The notes: generated by a model not told the origin, from the letters alone. A stretch of 64,000 bases of DNA from Oopsacas minuta (GCA_024704765.1 JAKMXF010000299.1:186001-250000); one strand, 5' to 3'; positions 3,001 to 63,790 are shown, numbered from the stretch's first letter. Translations and numbers: made by a program.

Positions 3001-6000
3001 ATTTCTGATTGCGGTATTTTTTCGTGAGTCGTTCAATTGTCCATTTTTTCCTCGCAGCCCAATCTCTCAACAATCCTGTGATTACTACAGGTTTCCCTGG
3101 CAACTCATATCGTCTATGGAATGTCTCAATACTTACATCAGAAGCACTGATTCTTTCAATATTATCAAAAACATTCGAAACATTCGTAGTATCCTTATCA
3201 TACATTCCGAATTGTGTCCAACCGAGTTCGCCCTTCAATTCGGGCCTGGCTCTACCCTTTACATCCGCTATCGTCCTATCTGCTCGAGAAATAAATCTCA
3301 CTTCATCTACGTTCTGTGTAATGCTACCTCTGGTGTCCGTGTATGGTGATTGTATGTTAGATGCCATTCTAATTGAAATATAATAAATGTAGAAATATAA
3401 TTATGTTCATAAAGTATCATAATTATTTTGTAAGGCCTAACGCGGTGAGTTATAAATAGCAAGTTTTTTCAGGGACTTAGAATTAATTTTGTATTGGAAA
3501 ATTCCTTTAGTAAGTTTACTTATTAGCAAGGGAAATCGTGCAAAATACGAAATTACTAAAGGCGAACTCAACTGTAATTATTTTAATCTTTGGTTTAGCA
3601 ACAAGATGTATCTACACCAGTCTACCTAGCTCAAGAAGGAGGATACCCTAAATCAGCTGATCACGTATTCTCTGAAGACTCAGAGCATGTATTTGAGATT
3701 TGTATAGAAGGAGCTAAAGATGTACATCCATTGGGATCAGGTAAATTACGATAATTAAAAAATAATAGATGAGTGGCTCCCAACCTGGGTCCATGGAGCC
3801 CTTGGTGGTCTACAGACGACCCACGGGTGAAATAGGTTGGGAACCACTGCATAAATCTACTCTATTACTATTCTTCGTAGGAGTATGGGGTGAAACAGAT
3901 TGCTATGTCTCTTACAAATTCCCAATTTCAACTCGGAATGAACACTACACCATGGATGAGCAAGTAGAACTAACTACATTCAATACACCTACTACGTTAA
4001 GCTTACCAGCACCTAATTTCTCTGCACATCATACTCATAAAATATTTCTCCGTGGAGGAACTTCTCTCCAACAAATCCTACTCGATTCTACATATGAAGG
4101 AATGAACCGTGAAGACAATGTTATAGAAAAAATGTAAGTTATAATAATTATATAAAGTGTATAAGAGCAATGGCTGTAAGAAAGAACCTAATAAAGTGAT
4201 ACAAAATAATAGTAGGAAAAGTATATGAAAGTGTTTGTGAGGAAACAAATCAAGTGCGTTCAATGAATGAACTTTAGCGAAATGAGTAGCTTATGTAGAG
4301 GATAACTATAGGAGGTTGGGAGAGCTAGTAGAATTCGTTAAGACCATGAGGTACACACGTTTCTAGTTCACGAATCCAGTGACTTTCTCTTTCCCCAAGT
4401 TTGTGAGGCTTCACGATCTCTATTCCGATCAGTTCAAATATCTTCATTGGGTCATCTTTAGCTGAAATAGCGCCTTTACTTTTTTCAATCTTGCATCGCT
4501 TATCTTTGGGGATATTCTCGCGGTTTTTCGTGTGTTCATAAAACGCGTGAACATCCGCACTAGTGCCCCTACCATGCCTTGCCATTGACCTATGATCCTC
4601 TAGTCTAGCTTGTAACTCCTTGCTACTTGAACCAACGTACTGCTTACGACATATAGTACAAGTTAGTATGTATATTAGACTACGAGTATTGCAATCGATT
4701 GCGTCACTAACTTCGTATATCTTCCTTCTCTGAGTACTGGTGAAATGTTTCTTCTCAATCATCATATCACAATTCTTACATTCTTTCTTCTTGCAAGGAA
4801 TCGTACCTACATTCTGTGGGAAAAAGCATATTTCACAAGTAGCTTCATAGTAGAGTATCTTCTCCAAATTATCCGCGGTGAAGAATTTTTCCCAAATAGT
4901 TTTCAAACTCTCGAACACATCTGCAGTTATTTTATACCGCTCAACCTTGCCTTTAGGAATGCCAATAGTATCGAATTCAGTGTAGAAAGTGCGTTCCATG
5001 CCAATGGGTATAATTTGTTGTAACTCCTTCTGATCTTTCTTTATCAAGAAGTAAAGCAGTGAGTATAAATCTTCTTTCAAATTGCGTAGAGTCTCGTATA
5101 TTACTCCAGGCTTGCTTCTCAAGCTGAGAAGTGCGAAATGTCTCACCTTATGCTGGTTTATCACACATACGAGAAGATCAGCTAGAACGCATTTAGCTTT
5201 TTCACCCACGTTTATACTTCCAAGAAGTTCCAACAATTCCATCAAAATATGTACTTTTCTCACACCTTCAAGACAAGTGTCAACTGTAAACCTACACCAC
5301 ACACAACGTCGATATGAAGGGTTCACTCTGTGATGCACGGCCCTGCACTTAGAACATCTAATCTGATTCTCTAATTCGTCATCACTGTCGCTATCATTAC
5401 TCAGAGCCTGGGGCAATATATCAGCTGATTTTTTAGCTACCTCTCCATACACTTCAGTCAAATCTATACAGTTTATGAATGTAGAATTGTCTATTATGAC
5501 AGTAGTGTATTTTAGCTTAGGAACCATCTCTACACTTCTACGAAATAAATATGGCCAGAATATTTCAGCTGACATATCAGGAGGAAATACACCGCAGTCT
5601 ACTACGAGATTAGTTGAATGTTCTACGATTGTTACAATATTAGCTTCGTTGTAATAGTGGACACGTATTGAGATGTCTAATTCTTTCTCGAATGGATCTT
5701 GAGCTGGTTCGGAGGATTTACGACCGCTTCGATTGAACCCTATACCGAAAATAGTCCTCTGTCCTGACTTGTCTACAGTCTTAGTTAACTGCGTGTATAC
5801 CCGAGTGCGATTTGATTTTATAAGTTCATCAAGGAAGGGCGTGCCTCTAGGGAAAAGAAGGAGAATACGAGATACCCCAAAACTATCACTTAGAAATTCA
5901 GGAATTCCCTTTGCCTCATCGAAAACGGATTCTTGCGCGCGAATACTCTGCTCAAAAGCTAGTTTAGCGTTCAAAAACTGATGCTTTGCCTTAGTTAATG

Positions 6001-9000
6001 GACTGTATGCAAGATCTTGTGATGCAGGCTCTGACATAACTAAATTGTTTATTTTATCAAATCGCACAATCTTTTATCTAATAACTGTAATGCCTACTGT
6101 ATACGCCTTGTGATCATATTTACTGGTTGAATAATCAGCCAAGCGCCTCAATAAACAAACTCAATTGATGAAATTAAAATACGTATAACGAACTAGGACT
6201 TCTTGATTATTAATAATTTTAAGACGAAAAACATTGGGTGGCATACGTACACGAACTCAATTGTTTTCATTTGACACTATTTTTAATGTTTCAAATTTAT
6301 TAAAATTCCAATCATATAAATTACGTAATATTAATAACACGATAACATATCACATGATTTGAGATCACATACAAATACTCGACCCTTGGCGTCTAATGTT
6401 ACTCCTCTGGGATTTGTGAAATCACCACCTGAGCCAATTTTTGTAATGAACTGGCCATCATTCGAGAATACCTTGACTTTATCTGTTAAGCTTTCGCTTC
6501 CGATAATATTGCCAGCATTGTCTATACAGAAATGTAAGCCTCCGTTAAATTGAGAGCTATCAATCACTGTACGCTTCAATTTACCGTTCTTATGGAAACA
6601 TTGTATTGTGTATTCTGAGTTTGAGAATAAGACATACCATTCTGAGTTGTGTAATTTCGAATCCATTATTCGCGTTCTTCCTTGCACGAAATGTTCTGTT
6701 TCAAGTTCGAGTTGCGTTATGATATCAAGGTTGCTTGTTTCTAAGGCGAATATATTTCTCTTTTTAGTTTCGAAAACGTAGAGAATTCCTTGTTCATCAA
6801 CGTTTATTCCTGTTATTGGATTGTTTAACCTTTGCAACTGAACCATTTCCCAATTTCCTTGTTCATTTTTCTCGAATTTTAACACCTTACCATTTTGTAC
6901 ACCACAAGTGACGAAAAACGCGTCTTTATAAGAACACATGTATAATGGTCTATTCAAGTTTGTGTCTTTGATCGTGGAAATATATTCGCCATTCTGGCTG
7001 TATACGTTTATCACATTTTTATTTCGGTCAGAAATAAGTAGTTCGTTCGTGTCGAGACTTAAGATTGAGAATGGCTCTTCCATTTCATTTTCACAAGTAC
7101 CCTTTTCTACTTCCATCCATTCCGGGTATACACGTTCGGTATATGGACAAATGTTGATGTTAATATTGCAAAAATCTTGGACATTTTCAAGTAACTTTTC
7201 GTTCAAATCCAATTCAACGCTTGGAGCTACCAAACTTTTGTCAAGTAGCTTCTCAATCTCTTCACTAATCGGTAATAGAGTTTGATACATGACATCTGTT
7301 AGCTTGTTATCTCGTATATTCACGACATTATCTCTGCATTTATCTAGACAAGATAATTTCCTATCTCTCTCATCAAGATTACATTTTGTATCATTGTATA
7401 CTCGATCTAGTTCTTCAATCAAATTTTGTTCTTTTTGATCAATTTTTTGTCTGAGATTCTCACATGTTTTTCCGATTTGCTGTTTTTTCGATTCAACCTC
7501 ACTCTTCAGTCGTTTCAAAGATAGAATTTCTAATTCTCTCTTATTGTTTTGAAACATTGCAAGTTTGAATATTAGTTTATTTAATTTTTAGCCAAATCTC
7601 TCATATATTTATACAAAAAGTTGTATAAAAATTAGTGAAAGCATTCTATGTCTATTCTTAGAGAATATAATTGGATTCTAAGTATTGCCTAATAATGTGC
7701 TTAAGGTAGCATACTTTCTATTTCTCTTTAGTTCACATAAATTTTTACGTAATAATAATGTTGTAATTAATTCAATATAAGCAAAATACGCTTTACAATA
7801 ATTTAAGAAATATCAACTACAATGGCAGTAAGCATATCAAGGATGTGAATTCCAGTGATATGAGGATGTGAGTAATTGCGTCCTTCCTCCAAGTAAACAA
7901 CAAAGTTCGTCATACACTGTTCCCGAATCATCTCGAGTTAATCTAATTAAATTCAGGTTCAAGCCATTTTGGGAAGGTTTTAACGTTTCAAAAGAGCTTA
8001 AAAACTGAATATGTACATGTAGTTTACTCACAAATATTTAGAATATTTAGAAAATTAAATGTTTTGTTTATCATATTACAGTCAACTCCCCTTAAATCTA
8101 ACACGGATATAGCGCAATTCGCGCCCGCTAATATCGAAGTTTTAAATCGTATGAATCATTAGATACATACCAATTGCCCAATAAAGCTGCCACACACGTA
8201 ACAAATGCATGATAACGTGTGACTGAGGTAAATAAATAATCTCAGAATTAAACAAGTTTTTTAATCTGGGGTTAGCTAATCTATATACCACCTGGAGTTG
8301 TAGTTATAAAAAAGATCTCTCAAGTGTGTTTTGTAGGGCTAAAAGTGTAATTTTGATATTTCTTTTATGATTGTCATTTTATGTCCCAATTTAGTGATTC
8401 CAAGTGCAGATAAGTCTTCTTTATCCAACAGTCCTAGGTGAGATCCTTGTATGTCATTGTCAATAAACGCGTTTTGATACATTTCCATACCAAAGCTCTC
8501 TAACCATTCACCTACTTCATCTGTAGACCATTCAGCTGTTTTTTTGAACTGACGACTATGCTTCAAATCCATGCGGTATAATATCTCATCTGGAGGCGTG
8601 ACATCATCTTGAGTAGCCTGATTACTCATCGTGTGTAACTCTAGATTAGATGGAGGTGGTGGTAGATAGTTGTCTTGGTTGAAACTCTTCTCAATATCAG
8701 GGGGAGGGGGTAGCATTTCGGGGTCTATACCATCGAACCATTCTGGAGGAGGCATGAGTACATACGAGGGAGGAGGGGACGGTATACCTGGAGAGTACAA
8801 AAATGAATGCGGAGGAGAATCTGCCTGTATATCAAGTGGAGTAGGTGTGTAGTCTAAATATGGTTCAAAGGTCAGATCCTCTTTTTCTGGTCCACCCTGG
8901 GGGAGATCACCTGGGAAGGTCAAATAGTTTGGTTTAGGAGGTGAACCTTTTTCAGGTGGTGAAGTAATCTGACCTGTTAGCTTACTCAGTTCAGAATCAC

Positions 9001-22933: not shown

Positions 22934-25900
22934 TCAATCTCTGATTCTACATTCACATATTGAATTTGGTATTTGAATTAGTCTATTGGGTGTGTCGCTA
23001 GGAGATTGGTCTGAATGGATGTTTAAAATTCCTTTTAGTGATTGTTGAATTAGATTCTGTTTAATTTGGTTATGAGTTAGAGTAGGACATTTCTCTAGCT
23101 GTATAGCAGCTATACCGGTTACATGGGGACCTGCATATGACGTACCGGTAAAAGTATCTGTACAAGTTGAACAGGAAAGAGAAGCAGATTTAATATCCTT
23201 CCCTAGCAACGAATACTTAATAAAATATGTGATGTTAAGTAATAATTATTGTATTTACCTGGAGCGAACAAATCAACACAAGGTCCATAGTTACTAATTG
23301 TCATCACGGTTTGAGCGGGAGTAGTACCGCCTACCACGATGGGTAGCGTCAAATTAGCTGGTAAATACTCACAAGCAGATTTACCATCATTTCCAGCTAT
23401 AGTAACGAATACACAACCAGCATTAACTAGCTCTCTTATACTATTCATAAGTGTATATCTCCATCCAGCAGATGAGTAATGCATCTCACCGAATACTGAT
23501 GCAGAGACGATACATGGTGAACGATGCCGCTGTAATTCCCTGTGACTATATAAGGAAATTCCCTGTATAAATCGTACTGGTTAATTACTGATAAATAAAT
23601 ACCTTAATATTTGTTCAATTCCATCAGCGAACATTCCCCAACTCCCTGATATATCTGATTTCAGAATTCTAACAGAGAACAGATCTACTCCAGGAGCTAC
23701 ACCCAAATCTCTGCCTCCTATTACTCCAGATACACTAGTACCATGTCCATGTGTGTCTCTACCTTCATGTTTCTCACTGAAATACTATAAATTAAAATAT
23801 CGCATTACATAAAATAATTAAGCAGTTCCCAACCTTTTTCACCCGTGGACCCCCTATACCAATTTTAACTCATTCTGTGGACCTCCTCCCAGGCTGAAAT
23901 ACAAATTATAAGATCCTGGGGACCCCCTGCTGTCGTTCGTGGACCACCAAGGAACAGCTGAAATAATATATAGGATTAAAAGCTATACATACCTGATCTA
24001 CTATATCAAATCCTGGGTATCTAGCTCTGCCCTCAAATTGTGTATGTTCATACATTATACCTGTATCCATGACGTATACAGATACAGATTTACCTGTCAA
24101 GCCATCTGGTCTGTTAAGACAGCTGTCAGAACTGTCACTCCCATCCAATATATCCAGATTCCACTCTTTGGTAGATTGAATACAATCATGCGAACCTTCC
24201 TATAATTAGCTAGTGTATAAACTAATATATGTGCATATGTTTAATGGAAATAATGACATAATTAGAAAATCTGTAAAATACAATTACTCTTAAGAGAAAC
24301 AGTTATAATTCTATTACTACCATCAACAGTTATCCCTCTTGGTATATTAAACTCTCCAGGTCCATTCATACCCTTAGTACCAATAGACTGTATGTATATT
24401 CCATCAGGAGAGAACACGAGCAACCGGTCGCATCCCTGGTCACTGAATATGAAATATCCTGACAAGTCAATGGTAAAGAAAATGGAAGAGAAAGGGTTTG
24501 ACTCAAGTAGTATAGTCGATAATTCTCCAGAAAATGTGAATATTTTCAAGTTTACTATGTCAAAATCAATTACATAGATCTTGTTATTAAATATACTGAT
24601 ATCTTTAGGTTGTAGCAATTCATGGTGTAGATATTGGAAATAATAAGGTGGACTGTGACAGAACACAAACACGCGGTTATTCCCACTATCACAAATGTAT
24701 AAGTCACCATCTGAATCTATAGCGATACCTTTCGCAAACTGCATTTTATATAACCCCCCATTAAAATACGTCACAAAATCTCCGTTTAAACTGAAGACTC
24801 CCACAATACTCCTGTCATAATCACTTACAAACACAAACCCATCACTAATAGCAAGCTTATACGGAAATGCTACTTCAGTCCTATCAGCTAGGAGATGGAA
24901 TTTGAATCGATAGTCAGCTGATTTGGAAAATACTTTAACTTCCCTAGTGTAAATATCAGTAATGTATATGTCCTGTGATGTTGATTCAACGCAAACACCA
25001 ATTGGTTTCCTCAAATGTCCGTATGTAATACCTTCACTAACTGTTGCAATTAACGGGTTAGGATAAATTGGGTAATTTCGTTGTGATTTGATCATTTGTC
25101 TAATAGCACACAATTATAGATATATTGATGAGGGAATTGATTAGTAATACAGTGTAAGGAAGGGTAAAACAGAATTTGAAATTCGTAAATATTACATAAG
25201 GAAAAATCGTAAATTTGATTAATCTTAGCAAACTCTGAGTTGTTAAACAGAGAATGCATTATAGATCTTAATAATGATGGTAATGCATAAATTAGTTGAG
25301 TATCAAATAACTCGTAAAAATATGTATATAAATGATTAAATATATATTTGGGTTTTAAGCCAAATTTATTGAAACTTGAAATGTCGATAAAAGAATTCAC
25401 TTGTGAATCTTGTCATAAACTGCGGTATATGACATACATCCTAGAATGCGGTCATATCAAGTGTAAACGTTGCTTAGAAAGTAGTAGTAGTATTGATCCA
25501 GAAGATACAGATAATACAGCGTGTCGAGTTTGTAATAACAATCAAGCTGAATTACAAGAGAACTTTCTCCATGAACATTTGGATCTATTAACAGAGATTA
25601 GATCAAACTTTCAAAACGAAAACCACAACGCTAAATGTGATCTATGTTTGGTGGAAAATAACCATAAGATAGAATTCTATTGTTTTGATAAGAACCGTTA
25701 CTTCTGTGAAGCTCATTTCGAGAAACATAACGATAACAAAGATTGTCTGTCTATGGACAAGATGGAAGTACTTAAAGATGACTTTAAAATACTACAAACA
25801 CGTAGAAGTCAACTTGACCCAATGTGTAGCCAGAACCACAACCGTGATGCAGAATATATTTGTTGTGGAAAGTTATTATGTCACAGGTGTAAAAACACTA

Positions 25901-27949
25901 ATCACAGAAATCATAAGTCTACTGGAGCTAAAGATGCGATAGAACAAGCTAGGAACACAATAGAACTTGAGAAAGGTTACGTTGAGAAACGAAGAAATGA
26001 TGTTAAACTCGAAGCAAAACAGTTACAAGAGAAAATTTCAAAACATGAACAAATATTCCACGAAGAAAATAAAGCTGTTACGAACGAGTTCAATGAAAAA
26101 ATTAAAAGATTGGTTGAGGAAAGAGATGATAAACTGAAAAAAATGGAGAAAGAACACAAAAATAAAGTAAGAATATTGGAAGAAGCAAAAGAAAGGAATG
26201 AAGAAAATCTTCAAACAGTTTACAGGTTTGAAAAGCTAGCTAAACTATCTCTTGAAATACTTCCACCATTACAACAGATCATGCACGTCGAGGCTATAAG
26301 AAAAATGTTACGAAAAGTGAATAAACATGATGATGATGATGATGATAGAGAAGATGTATTGGAAAATTTCAAACCTAGAAAACGCGAAAAACCTACAGAA
26401 TACGCACCTAAATTAAAAATAATACCTTCACTACCACCAAAACCAAGAACTCCATCCCCACCAACTCCCAAACCAAGACCACCATCAATATCAGCATTAC
26501 CAACTTCAACTCCAAAACCAACAGTCAAAAAAGATCACATCAAAATTGAAACACGAAAACCTGAAAATTCTCCGCGTTTACCCAGGAAAACAGCCTACAA
26601 AAATTCTTATACACCAAGCGCGAACACATTAACCATCAAATGTCCTGATAATACCAAAGTATTATCTGACGTCACTGTTGATAAGAACAACAATATTTAC
26701 ACAGCTGATCCCACTTGCAATTCAATATTAGTTTTCAACATGTACGGTAAATTCGTGGAGAAAATACACACCCCATGTGCTTCAATACAGACCCTATGCT
26801 ATTTCAGTGATAGAATAATATTCTCCACAAGCGATAACAAGGCATACCAAGTATCTATAAAGGATAAAGTAGTGAATGAGATAGCTGAATACTTAATCTT
26901 CATAAAAGGCAGACCGTTTATAAAACCACACGGTATGGCGTCTAGCATTGATGGGAACCTTCTCTACGTATGTGATCAAGCGGATGACCAAATATACATA
27001 CTTAACGATAAGCTAAAGAAAATGCAATCAATTGGGGGGATTACAGAGCCGATTGCTATAGCCGTTGCTCCTAATTCAAACATTTACGTGCTCTGTAGGG
27101 ATAATAAAGTAATCGTGATAAACGAGAAGAATGAGAGACGTAGTTTGGAATTAGGTAATCTGAGCGGGAGAGCTGAATACATAGCAACTAACCAAGTAAA
27201 CCAAATAATGATAAGTGATACAAAATGTCATTGTATTGATGTCTACAATGAAGATGGAAGTAAAGTAAGATCTTTCGTAGGATATTCACAGACAGAGCGA
27301 GTTAATTCTCCAGTTGGTATAACAGTTGATGGAGAAGGCAGATTGATAGTAGCAGAAGAGGATAGTAAACAAATAAAAGTGTTTTCACAATCTGTATTTC
27401 AGAGTAATGTGTATTAGTTAATTTTGTATATGTGTGTGTGTATGGATGGATGTAAATTCATAATATATTCAAATAATTAAATTATGAATTTATTATGATC
27501 TATTGAAGCTTCCTAATACGCTTACCATTGAAGCACAATCTTCATAACTTTGTCCAGGACGTATAACGTGATCTTCTTGAATATAAAAAACCAAATGACT
27601 TCTCATTACCTAAAATTATAAGCATAAATAGAAAATTAATTCATTGTTATTATAAGTAAAAAGTTCTTACGAGTGAGAGAAGATTTTGTGATAATCTAGC
27701 AGTGAATCCCAGATGTGTCTTGTGAGATTTCGCGATCAATTTGAACTCATCACCTTGTGAGATATCCTTCACTTTTCGTATAAGACATTCTCTTGAAGAA
27801 GGAGGAGCACTTCTCTTCAGGACAACAGAATAAATCCCCGAATAGTCATGTACAGTTGACGAATAGTAAACAGGCGCCCATCCATATACGTAGTGTATCC
27901 ATAAGAATAGCAATACGAATATGTACCTCATTAAGCTATATCTATTCAT
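22934..27949 (-). CDS. Secreted S8 subtilase (proteinase K-like) with I9 propeptide, 6 exons; intron 2 hosts two genes
   Basis: Phase-consistent exons 27671-27949 (signal peptide, GFTARLS), 27526-27609, 23993-24199 (YVMDTGI), 23603-23784 (HGHGT), 23259-23539 (AGN, NYGPCVDLFAPG), 22934-23202 (GTSYAGPHV). Confidence 0.9.
23820..23960. mobile_element. hAT-like MITE remnant in subtilase intron
   Basis: AAGCAGTTCCCAACCTTTTTCACCCGTGG and GTCGTTCGTGGACCACCAAGG match the reverse complement of 3771-3849. Confidence 0.55.
24262..25095 (-). CDS. Stand-alone NHL-repeat protein, intronless, nested on the same strand inside subtilase intron 2
   Basis: About 277 aa from ATG 25095; NHL repeats KPIGVCV, PYKLAISDG, AKGIAIDSDGDLYICDSGNNRVFVF, FNIPRGITVDGSNRII. 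Confidence 0.85.
   Translation of the reverse strand: MIKSQRNYPIYPNPLIATVSEGITYGHLRKPIGVCVESTSQDIYITDIYTREVKVFSKSADYRFKFHLLADRTEVAFPYKLAISDGFVFVSDYDRSIVGVFSLNGDFVTYFNGGLYKMQFAKGIAIDSDGDLYICDSGNNRVFVFCHSPPYYFQYLHHELLQPKDISIFNNKIYVIDFDIVNLKIFTFSGELSTILLESNPFSSIFFTIDLSGYFIFSDQGCDRLLVFSPDGIYIQSIGTKGMNGPGEFNIPRGITVDGSNRIITVSLKSNCILQIF
25381..27417 (+). CDS. TRIM-NHL protein (RING, two B-box-like, coiled coil, Pro-rich linker, NHL repeats), intronless, antisense-nested in subtilase intron 2
   Basis: CESC..CGHIKCKRC..CRVC RING; CDLC..CEAH; CSQNH..CHRC..HRNH; PHGMA, PIAIAV, PVGITVDGEGRLIVAE. Confidence 0.92.
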   Translation: MSIKEFTCESCHKLRYMTYILECGHIKCKRCLESSSSIDPEDTDNTACRVCNNNQAELQENFLHEHLDLLTEIRSNFQNENHNAKCDLCLVENNHKIEFYCFDKNRYFCEAHFEKHNDNKDCLSMDKMEVLKDDFKILQTRRSQLDPMCSQNHNRDAEYICCGKLLCHRCKNTNHRNHKSTGAKDAIEQARNTIELEKGYVEKRRNDVKLEAKQLQEKISKHEQIFHEENKAVTNEFNEKIKRLVEERDDKLKKMEKEHKNKVRILEEAKERNEENLQTVYRFEKLAKLSLEILPPLQQIMHVEAIRKMLRKVNKHDDDDDDREDVLENFKPRKREKPTEYAPKLKIIPSLPPKPRTPSPPTPKPRPPSISALPTSTPKPTVKKDHIKIETRKPENSPRLPRKTAYKNSYTPSANTLTIKCPDNTKVLSDVTVDKNNNIYTADPTCNSILVFNMYGKFVEKIHTPCASIQTLCYFSDRIIFSTSDNKAYQVSIKDKVVNEIAEYLIFIKGRPFIKPHGMASSIDGNLLYVCDQADDQIYILNDKLKKMQSIGGITEPIAIAVAPNSNIYVLCRDNKVIVINEKNERRSLELGNLSGRAEYIATNQVNQIMISDTKCHCIDVYNEDGSKVRSFVGYSQTERVNSPVGITVDGEGRLIVAEEDSKQIKVFSQSVFQSNVY

Positions 27950-46867: not shown

Positions 46868-48179
46868 CAGGGTGTCTAATAAGTTCTGTTATACATTTTC
46901 GCGCCTTAGACAGTAGCTATTAATATACTTATGAAGTAATCTTCTAGAATTTCTTGTAGCATTTTTGGCGCCCTTTCAAATTATACCAAGTATATATCAT
47001 TCAAGTTGATGATTTCCCAGAAAATCATGTTAGAAGAAATTCGTTCAAAAATTGTCACTTTTCACGAATCTGGATTTAGCAATAGTGAAATTCTAAAAAG
47101 GCTAAAAAATGATAAAGTGAATCCCATGTTGATCTATCGCACAATAAAACGATATATAGAGACTGGCAGCGTGTCCGACAGGAAACGAATTGGTCGTCCA
47201 AGATCCGCCCGCACACCAGCCCTGAAGAATAGTGTTAGATGTCGAATCCTAAGAAATCCCCGGCGTTCAATGCGAAAAATGTCTCGTGAATTCTGTGTCA
47301 ATCACGAAACGATGCGGAAATTGGTTGTAGAGGACCTAGGAATGAAGTCCTATAAGCGGAAAAACGTACACCATCTTAACGACTCCATACGTCGTAAGCG
47401 ACTCGAAAGATGCATACAACTAAAAGCCCGATTCGCTCCTGGGACTGAAGATCAGATTCTCTTCTCAGATGAGAAGCTGTTCACCGTTGAGGAGGCAAGC
47501 AATCGTCAAAACGACCGTATACTTGCTTCTCGAAGTCAGGATATCCCAGATAGCATCAAGTACATTGATAGAGTCCAGAAGCCTCTTTCTCTGATGGTAT
47601 GGGCGGGAGTGTCGGCAGACTCACGGACAAACCTGATTTTTGTCCCCCAAGGAGTGAAAATAAACTCCCAGACGTACAGAGAACTGGTCTTGGAGCCTGA
47701 AATTGCGTCTGCGGGTGAGAATCTCTTTCAAAACCATCCTTGGACTTACCAACAAGACTCTGCGCCTGCACATGCTTCAAAAGTATCCCAGAGTTGGTTC
47801 CGTGAGCAAAATATCGATTTCATAAGTAAGGATGAATGGCCACCATCAAGCCCAGATTTAAACCCACTCGACTATTCTGTTTGGGCAAACTTGGAGAGCA
47901 GGGCCTGTGCGAAATCTCACAAGAGTTTGGAGTCCCTCAAAGTTAGTTTGTTGAGCGAATGGCGGAAAATCCCACAGGAGGAGCTGCGAAAAGCTGTCCA
48001 TCAGTTTCGGAGCAGACTAACTTCCGTAATTCATAAAAAGGGAGGCTATATTGAATGATATTTGTAATTTGTAATTAGGAACATAAGTCCTAAGAAAATA
48101 GAAAGTTTCATGGCTTTACAATGGATAAATTTGAAATTATTGGGGAATTGATATATAACAGAACTTATTAGACACCCTG
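46868..48179 (+). mobile_element. Full-length Tc1/mariner transposon, DD37D (maT) family
   Basis: Perfect 26-bp TIRs CAGGGTGTCTAATAAGTTCTGTTATA, TA target-site duplication on both sides, 1312 bp. Confidence 0.95.
47009..48058 (+). CDS. DD37D transposase, intact
   Basis: N-terminal HTH region; FSDEK, QQDSAPAH, SPDLNPLDY with 37 residues between the second and third Asp. Confidence 0.95.
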   Translation: MISQKIMLEEIRSKIVTFHESGFSNSEILKRLKNDKVNPMLIYRTIKRYIETGSVSDRKRIGRPRSARTPALKNSVRCRILRNPRRSMRKMSREFCVNHETMRKLVVEDLGMKSYKRKNVHHLNDSIRRKRLERCIQLKARFAPGTEDQILFSDEKLFTVEEASNRQNDRILASRSQDIPDSIKYIDRVQKPLSLMVWAGVSADSRTNLIFVPQGVKINSQTYRELVLEPEIASAGENLFQNHPWTYQQDSAPAHASKVSQSWFREQNIDFISKDEWPPSSPDLNPLDYSVWANLESRACAKSHKSLESLKVSLLSEWRKIPQEELRKAVHQFRSRLTSVIHKKGGYIE

Positions 48180-57359: not shown

Positions 57360-59600
57360 ATGAGTATAATTTTCCAAATCGCTCTCCTAACAACTCTACT
57401 ATTGGTAGTAGAAAGCAGTGATGGTGCGTTGAATTATGAATTCTCAACTTCTCTCCATGCTAAGTACAATCTTTACTGGAATAGGCCAGCTGATGGGAAA
57501 ATATGTATGGCAGTTCAAGTGGAAACGTTAGGATGGGTTGGCCTAGGATTCTCTCCTAACGGAGGTATGATAGATTCTGACATTATGATGGCATGGGTGA
57601 TTGATGGGCAGGTTACTCTAACAGACAGATATGCTGTGAGTGAGAGTCTACCTGAGTTAGACCTGCAGCAAGACTTTGAGTTAATTGAAGGCTATGAAGA
57701 GGATGGGAAGACTACCATAGAGTTTTGTAGGTAAGTTGTTGTAAATTTTTATCCATATTAGCATATTAGGACAGCATCAGCTAGTATATTTCGTATAGGA
57801 AGCTAGAGACTTGTGATGAAGATTATCGAGATCGTAACATAGTAGCTGGTACTACAAAAGTTGTATTCAGTTGGAACAACAATGATCCTAACCCTAATCC
57901 TTTACAACATGGGACAAGAGGTACCATGAATGTTAATTTTATTGGTGCGCCAAGGCCCGAATTCTATCCAAGTGATTTACCAGCTGATACACAAATATTA
58001 GAATTCAAAATGGGAAATATAACTATCCCTCATGATACTGACACAACATACTGGTGTAGAACTCTACGATTGGACCAACCAGCTACAAAGCATCATGTTA
58101 TACAAATAGGTAAATAACTAAGGTTAATTATAATACAGTGGCGGAGGAAATAGATATATAGCTTGATTAGTCTGACCGCTATTCAATAATCATACAGTAT
58201 TGCAATTGTAATATGTACTCTCAATTTATGCAAATTCCGTAAATATGTAAATTGTTTAGGTAGTTATTTAGACTCAAGAACATTTTCATACTTACACCAT
58301 GTTGTATTATACCAATGTATGGGAACGATTGCAGAAATGGATGGAAATTGCATTGGTTCCAATGGTTTAATTGCTACACATCAACTGGATCTAAAATGCC
58401 AAGGTACAGTGATTAGCACATGGGCAGTAGGAGGTTCTGATGTACTTATTCCACAGGCCGTCGGCCTACCTATTGGACCAGATGAAGAGTATGACACTGT
58501 ACTGTTAGTAAATCACTATAACAATCCTCAGTTAGATGAAGGAATAGTGGATAATTCAGGATTCATATGGTACTATACTGCAGAGTTGAGGACACACGAT
58601 TTGGGTATATTTTATTTAGGACATACATTTACCGAGAACCTGAGTATTCCTCCTAAAACAGACAACTTTCTTGTACAAGTATACTGCCCGAATGAATGTA
58701 CATCTAGTTGGCCACATGATCTTAATATAATAGCCTCCTTACTGCATACACATTATACTGGATTTGCCATTTGGACACAGCTAATAAGAGATAATAAAGA
58801 GATTGAACTTATTGATAGCAATCAGAATTATGATCCTGATTTCCAGGTAAGCATCTAGAATAGTACATGTACTTTCGTTTAGAAATTAGCTAGAAATCAT
58901 ATACACTGTGGAACTTCACCCTGTATAAAATTTAAATAGTTTCGCGAGATAGGTCGTATATTAATTTACAAAATTTCAGGAATATCTCTACTTCGAAGAT
59001 CCAATTGTTGTGAAACCTGGGGATGAGTTCATAGTGAATTGTCTGTACCAGACTCAAGACAAAGATAATTTTACGTTTGGAGGACGATCTGCAAAAGAAG
59101 AAATGTGTTTCAATTTCCTCTACTATTATCCCAGAGTAACTCAGTCTTATTGTAGTATGAATTATCTGAAAGAAACTGCATTCAACTCAGCATTGGAATC
59201 ATTACAATGCAATAACGTAGATGTAGATGGAGCTACAACATATGAAGAGCTAGAAAACAGAGCGATGAATATCGATTGGACAGAAAAAATATCAAATACT
59301 CTGGAAATTGCTCAGAGTGTCAATCCAAATGGAGTTCTTGTATTTTGCAATTATAACTCATTCATAGTTAATATTCCTAAGCCTGGCGTAGACTACGAGG
59401 TATTCCATAATCGCTATGACACATGTGGAAGATATAACGGTACATACTATCCAGGGGGAGAGGATGCTAATTACTATTATGACTGTGATACTAATCAGCC
59501 TTACTTTGATCCAATTGGTCCTACAGACTCAGCTGCTGGTCTAACCCTACTTCCTGTTGTGATGTGGATGCTAGTTACAGCTGTACTCTCTCTTTTCTAA
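57360..59600 (+). CDS. MOXD1: DBH-like copper monooxygenase (MOXD1-like), 4 exons
   Basis: Exons 57360-57730, 57799-58109, 58260-58846, 58980-59600; signal peptide, DOMON (GWVGLGFSPNGGMIDSD), Cu ligands LHHVV, NHYNNP, HTH, EEMC; hydrophobic GPI-like tail. Confidence 0.88.
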
Positions 59601-59799: not shown

Positions 59800-62700
59800 T
59801 TATTTTCTTACTCGCTGTCTTGAAATTCTCCAGGAATTAGGTTCTTCATATCTGTTATAGAGAGGCTCAAGTTTTTCTTGTCGCTTTCGTTTACTTAATT
59901 TAGTTGGATCGCCAAACTTATAAAAAGCTGGTGCAAATTCAACAAGCCACTTAGGATCAACAGCAGTATTTTCTCTCATGTACTCTTTGGTAGTTAGCAC
60001 TAGCTCATGGTAGAGTATCCAATCAGGCTGTCGGTTGTAGAGGGAGGAGGAGGGATGTATATACACACTCTGATTATCTGTTAAAGTTTTGTAACCTTCC
60101 TGGGGGTCTTTTCGCGCGGAATTTCGGAAAAATCCGCTACAAATTGCTTTTTGTACTTTAGATACATCTTTCCCACAAGAAACTACATCTAGTTTATGTC
60201 TATCCATTATACCAAGCATTTGTTTGCGAATATCGTCAGCTCTGCGTAAAGATCTAGCTTGAACGAAATTCTCATAACACCAACTATTAGACATACGGTT
60301 ATTCTTCCAGGCGTTATAAACCGCGAGTAGAGTGAGATGATCGCCTTCAGGCTGATGGAAATTAGACTTTTTCTGATCAGCAACTGCTTGTTTATCTTTC
60401 GGTCGATAATAAACATTTTGAACAGATAACATTGACACAATTGTCAGTACTTCTTCACTACAGCCTAAATGTACGGATTGTATCAACATTTTAGACAGAG
60501 GCGGTTCTAATGGAAACTCTGCCATTCTCCTTCCTAATCTCGTCAACAGACCTTCATCGTCCAAAGCAGATAGAGAATGTAGCTGTTCCATAGCTAATAT
60601 CATCGTATCCATTGGTGGCGGGTCCATGAAATCAAAAGCGAGTAAATCATTAATACCCAATGCTTTCAATGACAATACAGTACTAGCTAGATTAGTACGT
60701 TGTATTTCCGGCACAGCTGTAGGTAACATTTCATCTCTATAAGCACGTTCTGTATAAAGTCTATAGCATTTACCGGGACCTGTTCTACCAGCTCTACCGG
60801 AGCGTTGCTTTGCTTGTGCCTGCGAAATGGGAGTGATTACAAGCGCATCTAAACAGCTCTTTGAATTGTATACTTTCTGTTTTACAAAACCTGGATCAAC
60901 TACGTAATATATCCCGTCTATTGTGAGAGAAGTTTCCGCGATATTAGTCGCGATTACAACTTTTCGAGAGCCAATTGGTGCTGGATCAAATATCCTAGTT
61001 TGCATTTCACTAGGCAATGCAGAATACACAGGTAAGATAATCAACTCTGGTACCTCAGGGCCAATGAACTTCATCCTTTCATATAGTACTTCACATGCAG
61101 TATCGATCTCTTCCTGCCCAGTTAAAAACAACAGAATATCACCAGGCGGTTCTTTTAAATGAATTTGTAATACAGATATCAGGGCAGCGTCCAGATAATC
61201 AGGTTCAGGATTCTTAGTGTATAAAGTCTCCACAGGGAAAGCTAAACCAGGGATTGTAAATATAGGAGCTTCATGGAAATACGAGCTGAATTTAACTGCA
61301 TCAAGTGTAGCTGACGTCACGATTAATTTTAAATCAGGTCTTCTCTTAACAGCCTTCTTCAATAAACCAAATAACACATCTGTATTGACGGTTCTTTCGT
61401 GTGCTTCATCTAACATTATAACTGAGTAAGCGAGAAGATCAGAGTCAATTAAACTCTCTCGTAATAACATTCCTTCTGTCATGTACTTGATAATAGTGTC
61501 ATTAGAAGTACAGTCTTCAAAACGAATCGTAAAGCCAACCTACGAGAAAGATAAGTTATAATTGAGATATAAATTATAAACTTGCCAACAACTTTGTTGG
61601 CAAGTATAATTCACGACATAAAATGAGATCTGTAGTATAAGAATATAAACTTACTTGTTCCCCTAATCTACATCCAAACTCTTCAGATACACGTTTAGCT
61701 ACGCTAGTAGCAGCTACTCTCCTTGGCTGTGTACAACCAATCCTTCCTTTCTTAGTGAACCCTTTCTCAGAAAGATATTGTGTTATCTGTGTAGTTTTAC
61801 CAGATCCTGTAGCTCCTATCACTATCAATATTTGATGCTTTACAATGGCTTCAATTAAGCTATCTTTAAGACGATAAATTGGTAGAGATTTTCTCTGTTC
61901 AATAATACTAAGACTTGTCTTCTTTCCGTATGAAACTTTATTCCCTCCGTATGAAGCTTTCTTCCATTCAGGCAGTTCTCCTGGACCAGTTCCTGTATTC
62001 TTAAGGTCCTGAGCGAAATATCTATCTCCTCCTTCTGGTATAGGATCTAGCCAGGACTTGTTGACGTCATGGACTACACTCTCTTGTTCGGATTCTCGTT
62101 TAGCTTGACGAATTTCGCGACGTTCTTTCGCAAGAGCACTCTGAGTAACAGCAGCTCTTTGTAGAGATCCGTCTGGATTCTTAATAATCTTTACTGGCGA
62201 ATGGATAGTCGTTAAGCGGGTTTGTCCTCTTAAAAATGGTGGTTCATCTTCTACAATTTCTATAAAGAAGAAATCTACAGTCAACTCCTGTTATATCAAA
62301 CACGGATATATCGAATTCTGAATTTTACAAATATGGTCCCAAACAGTCAAGTAACATAAATTACGTTGGTTTTATCGAAGTAATTATCGTGGTCCCTTGA
62401 GCTTCGATATAACGGGAGCAGGCTATATAATATTTTATATTAATGGTGTATTTACATATATTCCTATATCCTTACCAATATCAATATCCTCTTCAGAATC
62501 ATCCTGATTATCAGCTCGTAGTATACCAGTCTCCTCGTTATACCAAGGCAGATCCTCTAACTCCATTACTCCAGCTGCTACAAGTTGTTTCAACTCCCAT
62601 TTCTCAGGACTTGTACATCGTACTCTCTGTCTACCTCCTCCACCTGTCCAGGCTCGTTGTGCAGAATTTGGTACCTCATCATCTTCATTATACTCCGGAT

Positions 62701-63748
62701 TCTGTGTAGCAACAGGTCGTCCTACTTCACCCCCTGACATCAGATATTTATTCTCTCCAATATCTTCCCCAGTCTTCTGACAAGCTTCTTTCATGGATAG
62801 CCTTACTTTCTCTCCAATTAAACTCAAAACCTTTACATACACATGATCACCTCTACTCACCACATCATTAGGATCTGTTACTCTAACCGCTAGCATCTGA
62901 CTAACGTGTACTAATCCCGTCCAACAGCCTTTCACACCTTTTAAACTGACAAAACAGCCGTATTTCATTACTCCCGTTACAGTACCTTTGTATATATACC
63001 CAGCTATTGGTTCGTTGTCAACTGGACTGGGACTACGTTTACGTCTACTGTGTCTTGTGTCTTTTGAATTATCGCGGTTGCTATCACCTCTATGATGACG
63101 TGTTTTAGGCGATCTACTACGTGATCTCCTGTGGTTTCGTTTTATAGGAGATCTACTACGTGATCTATCTCTATGTCTGTGACGTGATTCTCTCTCGCGC
63201 TTTTTCACACTTTTTTGCTCCTTCGTGTCTAAATCTATACCTTTCTTCCTCAAAGCTTCCAGCTCCATTATAGTTGACTGTACAACTTCGCGGTTATTAT
63301 CACCTTCTTTAGGTTGTAGCAGCTTTTTCGTAGGCACAACATCGTCCTTTATGCACAAAGCTGGAAACTTTAATTTCGTCTCGTTATCAACAATTTGGCG
63401 ATATATCAAATTCGGATCTACTTCTATTTCTTTACCATTTACATCTCTCAATTTGTGTTCAATTTTGGAACTTGTTTTTTCAACTTTTCGTTGTTCAGAT
63501 TTATGTAAGTGACTATGTATTATCCTGTAAATATTCGCGATAAATGGCTCAGTGAATTCTGCGCCATTTTCTGTCAAATCTTTAGTAAACGTATCAATAT
63601 TCGCGTTTTTCTTGGCTATATGTATGATAAACTCAGCTACATCTTTGTCAACAACAAACTCACTCTCATTCCCGAAATGATTTGATAACTCTGTACACAA
63701 TTTATTTACTAAAGATATTCGCTCAAGCTCGCGAAATAATTCTGCCAT
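59800..63748 (-). CDS. DHX8: Pre-mRNA splicing DEAH helicase Prp22/DHX8, 3 exons
   Basis: Exons 62476-63748, 61655-62259, 59800-61539; RS region, S1 domain, [41 protein letters not shown]. Confidence 0.97.
62278..62425. mobile_element. CAGTCAACTCC-family MITE in DHX8 intron 1
   Basis: TA-CAGTCAACTCCTGTTATATC left; CTTCGATATAACGGGAG right; occupies 148 of 216 intron bases. Confidence 0.8.
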
Positions 63749-63790
63749 CAATCATTTATTTGCTAATTATCTAAAATAGATACTAATATA

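Follow-up and report, generated by a model that had tools for sequence, protein, structure and literature searches.

The fusion gene described here is, with a probability of about 0.8, a gene domesticated by its hosts, the glass sponges (Hexactinellida), with an endonuclease derived from a Penelope-like retroelement (PLE). We consider it a domesticated gene, and neither a truncated PLE nor the product of a new element class, because the locus is syntenic, present in single copy, free of flanking repeats and under purifying selection. The gene lies in a window of 64,000 nucleotides from Oopsacas minuta (GCA_024704765.1 JAKMXF010000299.1:186001-250000), where it occupies positions 4325..6037 of the minus strand with the ATG at 6037 and the stop codon at 4325-4327. 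It is a complete, intronless coding sequence of 570 amino acids plus stop, delimited by the ORF list, the translation, the orthologues and dN/dS. An intact and intronless ORF had been predicted at exactly this place, and every motif string quoted in that original prediction is present, once each, in the translated protein: the stretch beginning PFEKELD at aa 115-185, CSKC at aa 228-231, CVWC at aa 245-248, RLEDH at aa 478-482, RESHW at aa 550-554 and GLN at aa 565-567. The family consists of six clusters, i.e. the window protein and five orthologues, which are full length (81, 78, 78, 71 and 39% identity) and have the start methionine in common in the alignment. In the literature that we searched there is no report of a domesticated Penelope-like endonuclease.

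The C-terminal endonuclease module and its catalytic residues

By its sequence, the C-terminal module (aa 406-570; 4328..4822, minus strand) is the linker zinc knuckle plus the GIY-YIG domain of a canonical PLE with a C-terminal endonuclease (EN), as assigned from Pfam, HMMER, hhalign and column retention. Pfam recognises GIY-YIG (PF01541) in the 570-aa protein with an E-value of 2.6e-6 and 28.1 bits against a cut-off of 22.6, and hhalign aligns the module to 21 PLE RT-EN ORFs with a probability of 99.7% (E 4.7e-26). [quoted passage not shown] All significant matches to the fusion protein are of the PLE type, and 147 of 147 PLE-type matches cover the EN region alone. A reverse transcriptase (RT) was not detected in the ORF by Pfam (no RVT match). 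The Pfam and hhalign results together with the missing RVT match are in agreement with the prediction of a Penelope-type EN that does not follow an RT.

The residues of the module are well preserved. The knuckle of the linker, C-x4-C-x2-C, is located at aa 415-423, the core GIY...YVG with two internal cysteines at aa 455-469, and Arg478, His482, Glu551 and Asn567 are present in the window protein, where the predicted signature of a Cys cluster, GIY-YIG and the R, H, E and N residues is thus intact. Three linker columns that are invariant in PLEs are Cys in all six orthologues, and the same holds for the two cysteines of the CCHH motif (PLE-invariant C884 and C887); the His columns of this motif are also kept in 6/6. 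Nearly all columns that are invariant or near-invariant in the 21 PLE ORFs are retained in five orthologues, including R, H, H, E, W and N; the exception is PLE position 922, where all six have Ala instead of F. A basic and conserved insertion of ~26 aa (roughly aa 503-530) between the His region and the Glu helix is specific for the family. For the EN part the AlphaFold model is of low quality (pLDDT <50), since the alignment supplied was limited to six sequences.

All four catalytic residues (R, H, E and N) are kept in the window protein and in four other orthologues. In the window species and these four close relatives the protein would presumably act as a one-metal GIY-YIG enzyme that nicks or cleaves DNA, a mechanism for which we see an even chance. 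In P0006, which with 39% identity is the orthologue furthest from the others, Ala stands in place of the catalytic Arg and also of the Glu that binds the metal; the P0006 ORF of 577 aa is intact, the architecture is whole, and all Cys/His motifs as well as the Asn are kept. What the family as a whole has conserved may therefore be a function other than cleavage, and catalysis, as read from these residues, may not be universal. Another reading takes the protein for a catalytically idle DNA-binding or regulatory protein in which the PLE EN fold and the zinc motifs have been kept for DNA recognition and cleavage is not under selection. P0006 would fit this reading, as would the constraint on the non-catalytic regions, which is as strong as in most of the protein; however, P0006 is a single sequence on one short contig, and all catalytic residues are invariant in the five closer species despite saturated synonymous sites. 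The dN/dS of the EN is 0.04 (L001 vs L007, the least saturated pair of contigs) and no region has a lower value, as expected if the active site matters. We consider an idle protein unlikely.

The N-terminal 400 residues and the integrase-like reading

Protein searches found no relatives of residues 1-400 outside the six-cluster family, and the N-terminal profile gave no match to PDB sequences at E<=10. The protein starts with a helical region of orphan sequence (aa 1-95; 5753..6037, this and all following features on the minus strand), for which the secondary structure of two AlphaFold models features long helices at aa 13-41, 52-61 and 67-90; its dN/dS is 0.04 in the least saturated pair. A small beta-beta-beta-alpha-beta domain (aa 117-198; 5444..5689), delimited by the two AlphaFold models and by column conservation, leads into an acidic linker rich in Ser, Asp and Glu (aa 199-227; 5357..5443), which is disordered according to its composition and a pLDDT of <35 in both models and represents the least conserved segment (pN 0.15-0.31). 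The linker is followed by a putative zinc ribbon of the form CxxC-x13-CxxC (aa 228-248; 5294..5356), which is proposed from Cys conservation and is without confident structure in the two AlphaFold models. Its first Cys pair is invariant and the second is present in 6/6 orthologues, offset by two residues in P0006; the pair of CxxC motifs noted in the original prediction as CSKC..CVWC is in this way kept in the six orthologues. A second helical domain of orphan sequence (aa 263-400; 4838..5251; helices at pLDDT 70-84; dN/dS about 0.10) completes the N-terminal part.

The small beta domain comprises the stretch that had been likened to the core pattern of retroviral and Gypsy integrases, and the gene had accordingly been described as a fusion of two mobile-element nucleases. 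At the level of sequence this pattern is no better than chance: no Pfam rve or DDE family matches any of the six orthologues at E<=10, and neither the PFE nor the SAE residues quoted for it are constant in the orthologues (column conservation). The comparison of structures that had been suggested as a check gave a divided answer, since integrase cores do top the Foldseek ranking of the domain while all of these matches remain below threshold. The view that aa 117-198 could be what remains of a retroviral or Gypsy-type integrase core, or a miniature version of it, and the protein hence a chimera of two nucleases, draws on predicted structures. Two independent AlphaFold runs predict the beta-beta-beta-alpha-beta unit, with four strands and a single long helix, at aa 120-182 with confidence (pLDDT 75-85), and this is the order of elements in the first half of the RNase H-like fold. 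In that fold the first two carboxylates reside on strand 1 and just past strand 4. Acidic positions in the sponge domain are 121 (D/E), 139 (E/D) and the invariant D147, D183 and D192, of which D/E121 is predicted on strand 1 and D183 just past strand 4. Integrase catalytic cores are also the only compact matches in Foldseek (~76 columns, rmsd 4.0-4.3 A, probability up to 0.69), with endonuclease V ranking below them. However, these best matches have E-values of 0.4-2 and target-normalised TM scores of 0.31-0.37, no match to the domain reached the threshold of E<=1e-3, and the number of such rows is inflated by the great abundance of HIV integrase cores in the PDB; a structure search of BFVD with the domain gave no match. 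The unit has ~80 residues as compared to ~150 in a full core, and the fifth strand and the helix with the third carboxylate are absent from the predicted models after aa 117-198, where the disordered acidic linker directly follows. With neither rve/DDE families, PDB sequences nor relatives in its support, we regard the integrase-type origin of this domain as improbable.

Of the proposed fusion of two mobile-element nucleases the PLE endonuclease therefore stands; a nuclease fusion is shown for one nuclease only, because an integrase- or RNase H-like N-terminal half is not established. We would assign a slightly smaller chance to the full scenario that a glass-sponge ancestor fixed a gene in which a miniaturised integrase-type domain (aa 117-198, together with the CxxC...CxxC ribbon) was joined with the Penelope-type GIY-YIG endonuclease. 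If this scenario were true, the gene would code for a DNA-processing enzyme with two active sites that has no known counterpart.

A syntenic single-copy locus under purifying selection

The putative operon in which the original prediction placed the gene amounts to no more than five genes on the same strand, with gaps of 290-960 bp between them. In the contigs compared, a gene for a protein of 408 aa is always found ~290 bp upstream of the fusion gene on the same strand. The locus is compact and poor in introns, in line with the published figure of 1.59 introns per gene for Oopsacas minuta (PMC10280926). In contigs from five other samples the genes follow one another in the identical order, Ank / SHANK-like / 408-aa / GIY-YIG / JmjC / kinase / EF-hand / MRPL23, and the neighbourhood is conserved in every genomic contig that is long enough (L001-L003, L007, L008 and L010-L013). 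Each haplotype contig carries one syntenic copy, and no second copy is present within the window; an apparent second copy in L009 is due to a foldback contig that shares 99.6% identity with the sample's own normal locus, small indels aside. No TIR, LTR or TSD-like repeats flank the gene, as had been predicted, apart from short repeats at chance level. A PLE remnant, e.g. a terminal repeat, was not found around the gene, and neither hammerhead ribozymes nor other Rfam families reached the gathering score anywhere in the window. Copy number and flanking repeats, two of the properties suggested for closer inspection, thus indicate a host gene.

The synonymous sites of the fusion gene are saturated (pS 0.5-0.8) at a pN of 0.07-0.17, and in the pair L001 vs L007 the dN/dS of the whole gene amounts to about 0.08. 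For the individual domains dN/dS is about 0.04-0.12 throughout. Between two haplotype contigs, 7 synonymous and 0 non-synonymous substitutions separate the copies of the gene. The comparison with orthologues, likewise suggested beforehand, hence indicates strong purifying selection. Evidence for expression comes from one glass sponge, Vazella pourtalesii, in which a member of the family is the ORF of a Trinity transcript (EukProt); three Logan contigs of 2 kb (L004-L006) may be transcripts as well, without a poly(A) tail. The syntenic position in different species, the single copy in each haplotype, the range of dN/dS and the Vazella transcript all fit the first of the two options originally offered, namely domestication.

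Two mobile-element readings can be dismissed on these grounds. That the ORF is a 5'-truncated or decayed PLE copy, i.e. a retroelement fragment miscalled as a gene, has next to no probability: its EN closes the ORF as it does in canonical PLEs, and many database matches of similar length are RT+EN fragments, but residues 1-400 have no similarity to an alignment of PLE ORFs (hhalign probability 0.45%; 0/147 PLE-type matches to any upstream sub-region), so that this reading, one of two outcomes named in advance as fatal to the prediction, fails, and six clusters of 39-81% identity all have an intact ORF at about 0.08 dN/dS, with fixed synteny and no terminal repeats or hammerhead ribozymes. Just as improbable is an undescribed and still mobile element, for instance a selfish gene that codes for a nuclease only, possibly paired with the neighbouring 408-aa gene; the orphan N-terminal sequence, the constant distance and orientation of the 408-aa gene and the existence of stand-alone PLE-type ENs beside Terminons in bdelloid rotifers (PMC8557442) would suit it, but the same housekeeping genes flank the gene in every species, and the second option of the original prediction, the protein of an undescribed element class, is contradicted because the locus is syntenic and fixed, without repeats (TIR, LTR or TSD) or extra copies.

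Proposed origin and comparison with known systems

For the domesticated fusion gene we assume that 5' truncation reduced a PLE copy to the 3' end of its ORF, that a host ORF acquired this remnant in frame as its C-terminal part, and that the fusion was then fixed. In GIY-YIG homing endonucleases, tethered DNA-binding domains supply the target choice. By analogy, the orphan N-terminal modules and the two zinc motifs of the sponge protein might provide target choice and perhaps oligomerisation.

The PLE endonuclease domain (NCBI cd10442, as named in PMC8557442) is defined by a CX2-5CxxC linker, as in Neptune, Nematis and Naiad, and by a CCHH motif with two cysteines between GIY and YIG (Craig et al. 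2021, PMC8557442). The sponge module resembles these canonical PLEs with a C-terminal EN (Neptune/Nematis type, Naiad) in the CX2-5CxxC linker, the Cys ahead of GIY, the CCHH motif, the QYVG, R...H, H, E..W and G.N residues and the position at the end of the ORF. It differs from them by the conserved basic insertion of ~26 aa between the His region and the Glu helix, by the absence of RT or any other PLE sequence upstream, and by a gene that is single-copy and syntenic without terminal repeats or hammerhead ribozymes.

In bdelloid rotifers, stand-alone ENs of the PLE type, which have both zinc motifs as well as large insertions, adjoin Terminons, the giant telomeric retroelements of the Athena type (Arkhipova et al. 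2017, as described in PMC8557442 and PMC6431247). Compared by these descriptions only, the sponge EN is similar in being PLE-related and not fused to an RT and in having both zinc motifs plus an insertion; contrary to the Terminon ENs, which are described in or beside telomeric giant retroelements, the sponge gene is situated among conserved host genes and has an orphan N-terminus of 400 aa. With the retroviral or Gypsy integrase core the small beta domain would share the predicted beta-beta-beta-alpha-beta order and the acids on strand 1 and after strand 4, at half the size and without a fifth strand, a third carboxylate, sequence similarity or a significant structural score.

Eukaryotic host GIY-YIG nucleases comprise SLX1 and the ANKLE1/COG3680 group (Dunin-Horkawicz et al. 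2006, PMC1564403). The sponge gene is like SLX1 and ANKLE1 in that a cellular, non-mobile GIY-YIG domain is joined to other domains; however, SLX1 has a RING finger and lacks the C-terminal Asn, ANKLE1 has ankyrin and LEM domains, and both belong to different GIY-YIG families without the PLE zinc motifs of the sponge EN. Imagin is a domesticated animal gene that is derived from a Ginger1 transposon (PMC12863088). Like domesticated genes of this type, the sponge gene is single-copy, syntenic and under purifying selection and has kept a catalytic domain of a mobile element; unlike in those genes, the donor was the endonuclease of a Penelope-like retroelement.

A Penelope-type endonuclease without a reverse transcriptase

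The GIY-YIG gene is a fusion gene that glass sponges have domesticated. It forms a single intact open reading frame (ORF) on the minus strand of the window (4325-6037; ATG at 6037, stop codon at 4325-4327) and codes for 570 residues. A GTG ten codons upstream of the ATG lengthens the mechanical ORF to 6067; the same Met starts all orthologues. Each of the strings quoted in the original prediction was found once in the gene product, which carries the stretch beginning with PFEKELD at residues 115-185, an acidic linker at 199-227, CSKC and CVWC at 228-231 and 245-248, a Cys knuckle at 415-423, the core from GIY to YVG at 455-469, RLEDH at 478-482, RESHW at 550-554 and GLN at 565-567. The predicted lack of a reverse transcriptase (RT) was confirmed by Pfam, which recognised GIY-YIG alone (E 2.6e-6) and no RT.

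An exhaustive HMMER profile search returned 4195 proteins at E<=1e-3. Outside the family, all listed matches were confined to profile positions of about 405-570, and the long ones consisted of RVT_1 followed by a C-terminal GIY-YIG, i.e. they were RT-EN ORFs of Penelope-like elements (PLEs; EN, the GIY-YIG endonuclease). In a profile-profile comparison residues 406-570 aligned to 21 PLE RT-EN ORFs with a probability of 99.7% (E 4.7e-26). The invariant and near-invariant columns of these 21 ORFs are kept in the window protein and in four close relatives, with the single exception of a near-invariant F that is replaced by Ala in six of six orthologues. Among the kept columns are three linker Cys, the Cys before GIY and two Cys between GIY and YIG, as well as QYVG, the Arg, three His, the Glu, the Trp and the Asn; these are the features by which the EN of PLEs has been defined (Craig et al. 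2021, PMC8557442). The HMMER matches, the profile-profile probability and the kept columns together establish the C-terminal domain as a Penelope-type endonuclease, as had been proposed. Its linker knuckle suggests the Neptune/Nematis/Naiad type and not Penelope/Poseidon. The His region and the Glu helix are separated by an insertion of about 26 residues that is basic and conserved.

PLE-type EN domains also occurred in other non-RT contexts among the HMMER matches. In one database protein (P0010) two EN copies precede a dynamin-type GTPase domain, a second (P0011) has three EN stretches, and a third of 872 residues (P0024) carries the EN in mid-protein and gave no Pfam match. These proteins may be gene-call chimeras or additional captures.

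Orthologues and the N-terminal 400 residues

A word search with the whole protein yielded five further clusters of the same length (81, 78, 78, 71 and 39% identity) and nothing beyond the resulting six-cluster family. An ORF of the glass sponge Vazella pourtalesii, from a Trinity transcript in EukProt, belongs to a 78% cluster, and Vazella metagenome scaffolds carry a protein identical to the product of this ORF. The window itself probably belongs to a related hexactinellid. The most distant orthologue, P0006 (39% identity), scored 430 bits in the word-indexed search yet was missing among the listed matches from the 50%-identity representative library, which may therefore lack some divergent family members. 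A 98-residue fragment recorded as 'hypothetical protein, Salmonella sp. s51228' (P0007, UniRef100_UPI0039815422) matches residues 471-569 of the sponge family (E 9e-43); most likely it is sponge DNA contaminating the Salmonella record.

Judged from sequence comparison, the N-terminal 400 residues are an orphan. Neither a profile search with all 400 residues nor one with residues 105-262, aimed at shorter proteins, detected relatives outside the family. Searches of PDB sequences with the N-terminal profile gave no match at E<=10, and Pfam at the same threshold gave no family common to the N-terminal part of the orthologues beyond chance. The whole protein, when compared with PDB sequences, gave only a match to a sorting nexin (E 0.5), which was dismissed as chance level. 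Two AlphaFold runs, each based on shallow alignments of six sequences, agreed in their layout: long helices (residues 13-90), a confident beta-beta-beta-alpha-beta unit (120-182, pLDDT 75-85), the disordered acidic linker with an unmodelled segment holding both CxxC motifs (about 199-262) and a helical domain (263-399, pLDDT 70-84). The second CxxC is present in P0006 as well, displaced by two residues in the alignment.

The original prediction had assigned residues 117-198, here called the beta domain, to an integrase-like core, i.e. to an RNase H-like fold. The model of the whole protein was poor (pLDDT 46), so that its Foldseek list is largely noise; that of the N-terminal part reached a better pLDDT of 61. 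Foldseek found no match in the PDB at E<=1e-3 with either model, and a BFVD structure search with the N-terminal model found no significant one. The only compact Foldseek matches were catalytic cores of retroviral integrases, which ranked above endonuclease V and superposed over about 76 columns with an rmsd of 4.0-4.3 A. Acidic residues are moreover conserved at D/E121 in strand 1, E/D139, D147, D183 just past strand 4, and D192. However, the integrase matches are sub-threshold (E 0.4-2; target-normalised TM 0.31-0.37; highest probability 0.69 and 0.38 for models 1 and 2), and the PFE and SAE residues on which the assignment was built differ between orthologues. An integrase core is twice as large as the predicted unit, which lacks a fifth strand, a third carboxylate and sequence support. 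We consider a true RNase H-like ancestry of the beta domain unlikely.

A host gene and its neighbourhood

The original prediction left open whether the gene is a domesticated fusion gene of the host or the protein of a mobile element; the first reading stands, and fixed synteny, a single copy and the lack of repeats exclude the second. The locus order Ank, SHANK-like, 408-aa gene, GIY-YIG gene, JmjC, kinase, EF-hand, MRPL23, MRPS33 and Fcf2 was identical across all genomic contigs of sufficient length, and the neighbours are of animal type (JmjC, the 408-aa NHL-like propeller, a SHANK-like Ank-SH3-PDZ-SAM protein, CENP-I, Vps39 and a DHX8-like helicase). The window holds one copy of the GIY-YIG gene; as had been noticed before, no TIR, LTR or TSD-like repeats surround it. 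Rfam revealed neither a hammerhead ribozyme nor any other family, and PLE ORFs matched nothing in the window and the fetched loci besides the GIY-YIG gene itself.

Selection on the protein is strong. Between species, Nei-Gojobori estimates gave saturated synonymous sites (pS 0.5-0.8) and a pN of 0.07-0.17, and a comparison of two haplotype contigs from a single sample showed seven synonymous and no non-synonymous differences. For the least saturated pair, dN/dS was 0.08 for the whole gene, 0.04 for both the EN and the N-terminal helices, 0.10 for the helical domain and 0.12 for the beta domain. The GIY-YIG gene is a host gene and not an element.

A contig of 8279 bp (L009; ERZ26869290 ctg230948) carries two inverted copies of the pair formed by the 408-aa and GIY-YIG genes, with the GIY-YIG ORF called as two pieces in either arm. 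Small indels aside, both arms agree with one another and with L011, the sample's normal copy of the locus, at 99.6% identity; L009 is therefore probably a long-read chimera or artefact rather than a duplication, and we rejected this foldback contig with its indel errors as a second gene copy.

Nor is the gene simply a 5'-truncated PLE RT-EN ORF, because the upstream 400 residues are without PLE similarity: they aligned to the PLE alignment with a probability of 0.45%, and of the HMMs built for six sub-regions and run against 147 non-family matches, the one of residues 406-570 found 147 of 147 and the upstream ones none at E<=1e-3, despite the tiny database size. In one alignment each by tblastn and hhalign, similarity to one database match (P0121) seemingly begins at about residues 303-310; this extension was rejected as not independently significant, because no sub-region before residue 406 scores alone against the 147 matches and the 21-sequence PLE profile aligns from residue 406 only.

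Several other features of the window were recorded. In all species seen (contigs L001-L003, L007, L008 and L010-L015) the 408-aa gene (6331-7557, minus strand), with weak NHL/beta-propeller matches, precedes the GIY-YIG gene in the same orientation, with a spacing of about 290 bp; further NHL-propeller genes are found at 24262-25113 (minus strand) and, with a RING finger, at 25348-27417 (plus strand). The spacer between the GIY-YIG and JmjC genes contains a hairpin-like element of 77 bp (3772-3848) with inverted arms of 15 nt that are 93% complementary; a partial copy is located elsewhere in the window, at 23821-23848. Three arm matches were observed against a chance expectation of 0.09, and the element is possibly a small MITE-like repeat. 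An ORF of 350 residues at 47006-48058 (plus strand), in a region of locally raised G+C (0.40-0.41), matches HTH_32 and DDE_3 below the Pfam cut-offs and is a relic or copy of a Tc1/mariner-type transposase. A DHX8/PRP22-like helicase (S1, Helicase_C, HA2, OB) is spread across three ORFs at 59800-63751 (minus strand), presumably split by short introns, and a copper type II monooxygenase at 58319-59600 (plus strand) is also split; both are ordinary host genes. The long, intron-poor ORFs of the window are consistent with an intron density of 1.59 per gene, the value published for Oopsacas minuta (PMC10280926).

Proposed function and known systems

We assume that a canonical PLE copy, truncated on its 5' side, probably gave rise to the EN through its 3' end. 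In the species of the window the protein is likely to nick or cleave DNA as a GIY-YIG enzyme, and the orphan N-terminal modules, together with the zinc motifs, may aim it. P0006 is an intact ORF of 577 residues on a 2-kb contig (L004:236-1969) that has Ala in place of the catalytic Arg and of the metal-binding Glu; the architecture, the Cys/His motifs and the Asn are all kept. In this lineage the protein probably does not act as a nuclease, so that selection may in part maintain a non-catalytic function, and P0006 provides a naturally occurring comparison of catalytic with non-catalytic use of the EN.

Transposon nucleases are well known as a source of host genes, for example RAG and integrase-derived genes. 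Neither a domesticated PLE endonuclease nor a sponge gene of this kind was described in the limited set of literature searched. The present case would be the domestication of a PLE EN in an early-branching animal lineage, freed from the RT and under strong selection. A natural RT-free PLE EN with both zinc motifs would allow for a comparative study of DNA recognition by this little-understood domain. For annotation, it cautions that a PLE-type GIY-YIG match alone is no proof of a retroelement. The closest described systems are the ENs of PLEs and the stand-alone PLE-type ENs beside the Terminons of bdelloid rotifers (PMC8557442, PMC6431247). The Terminon ENs have zinc motifs and large insertions in common with the sponge EN but, unlike the sponge gene, are located in telomeric giant retroelements.
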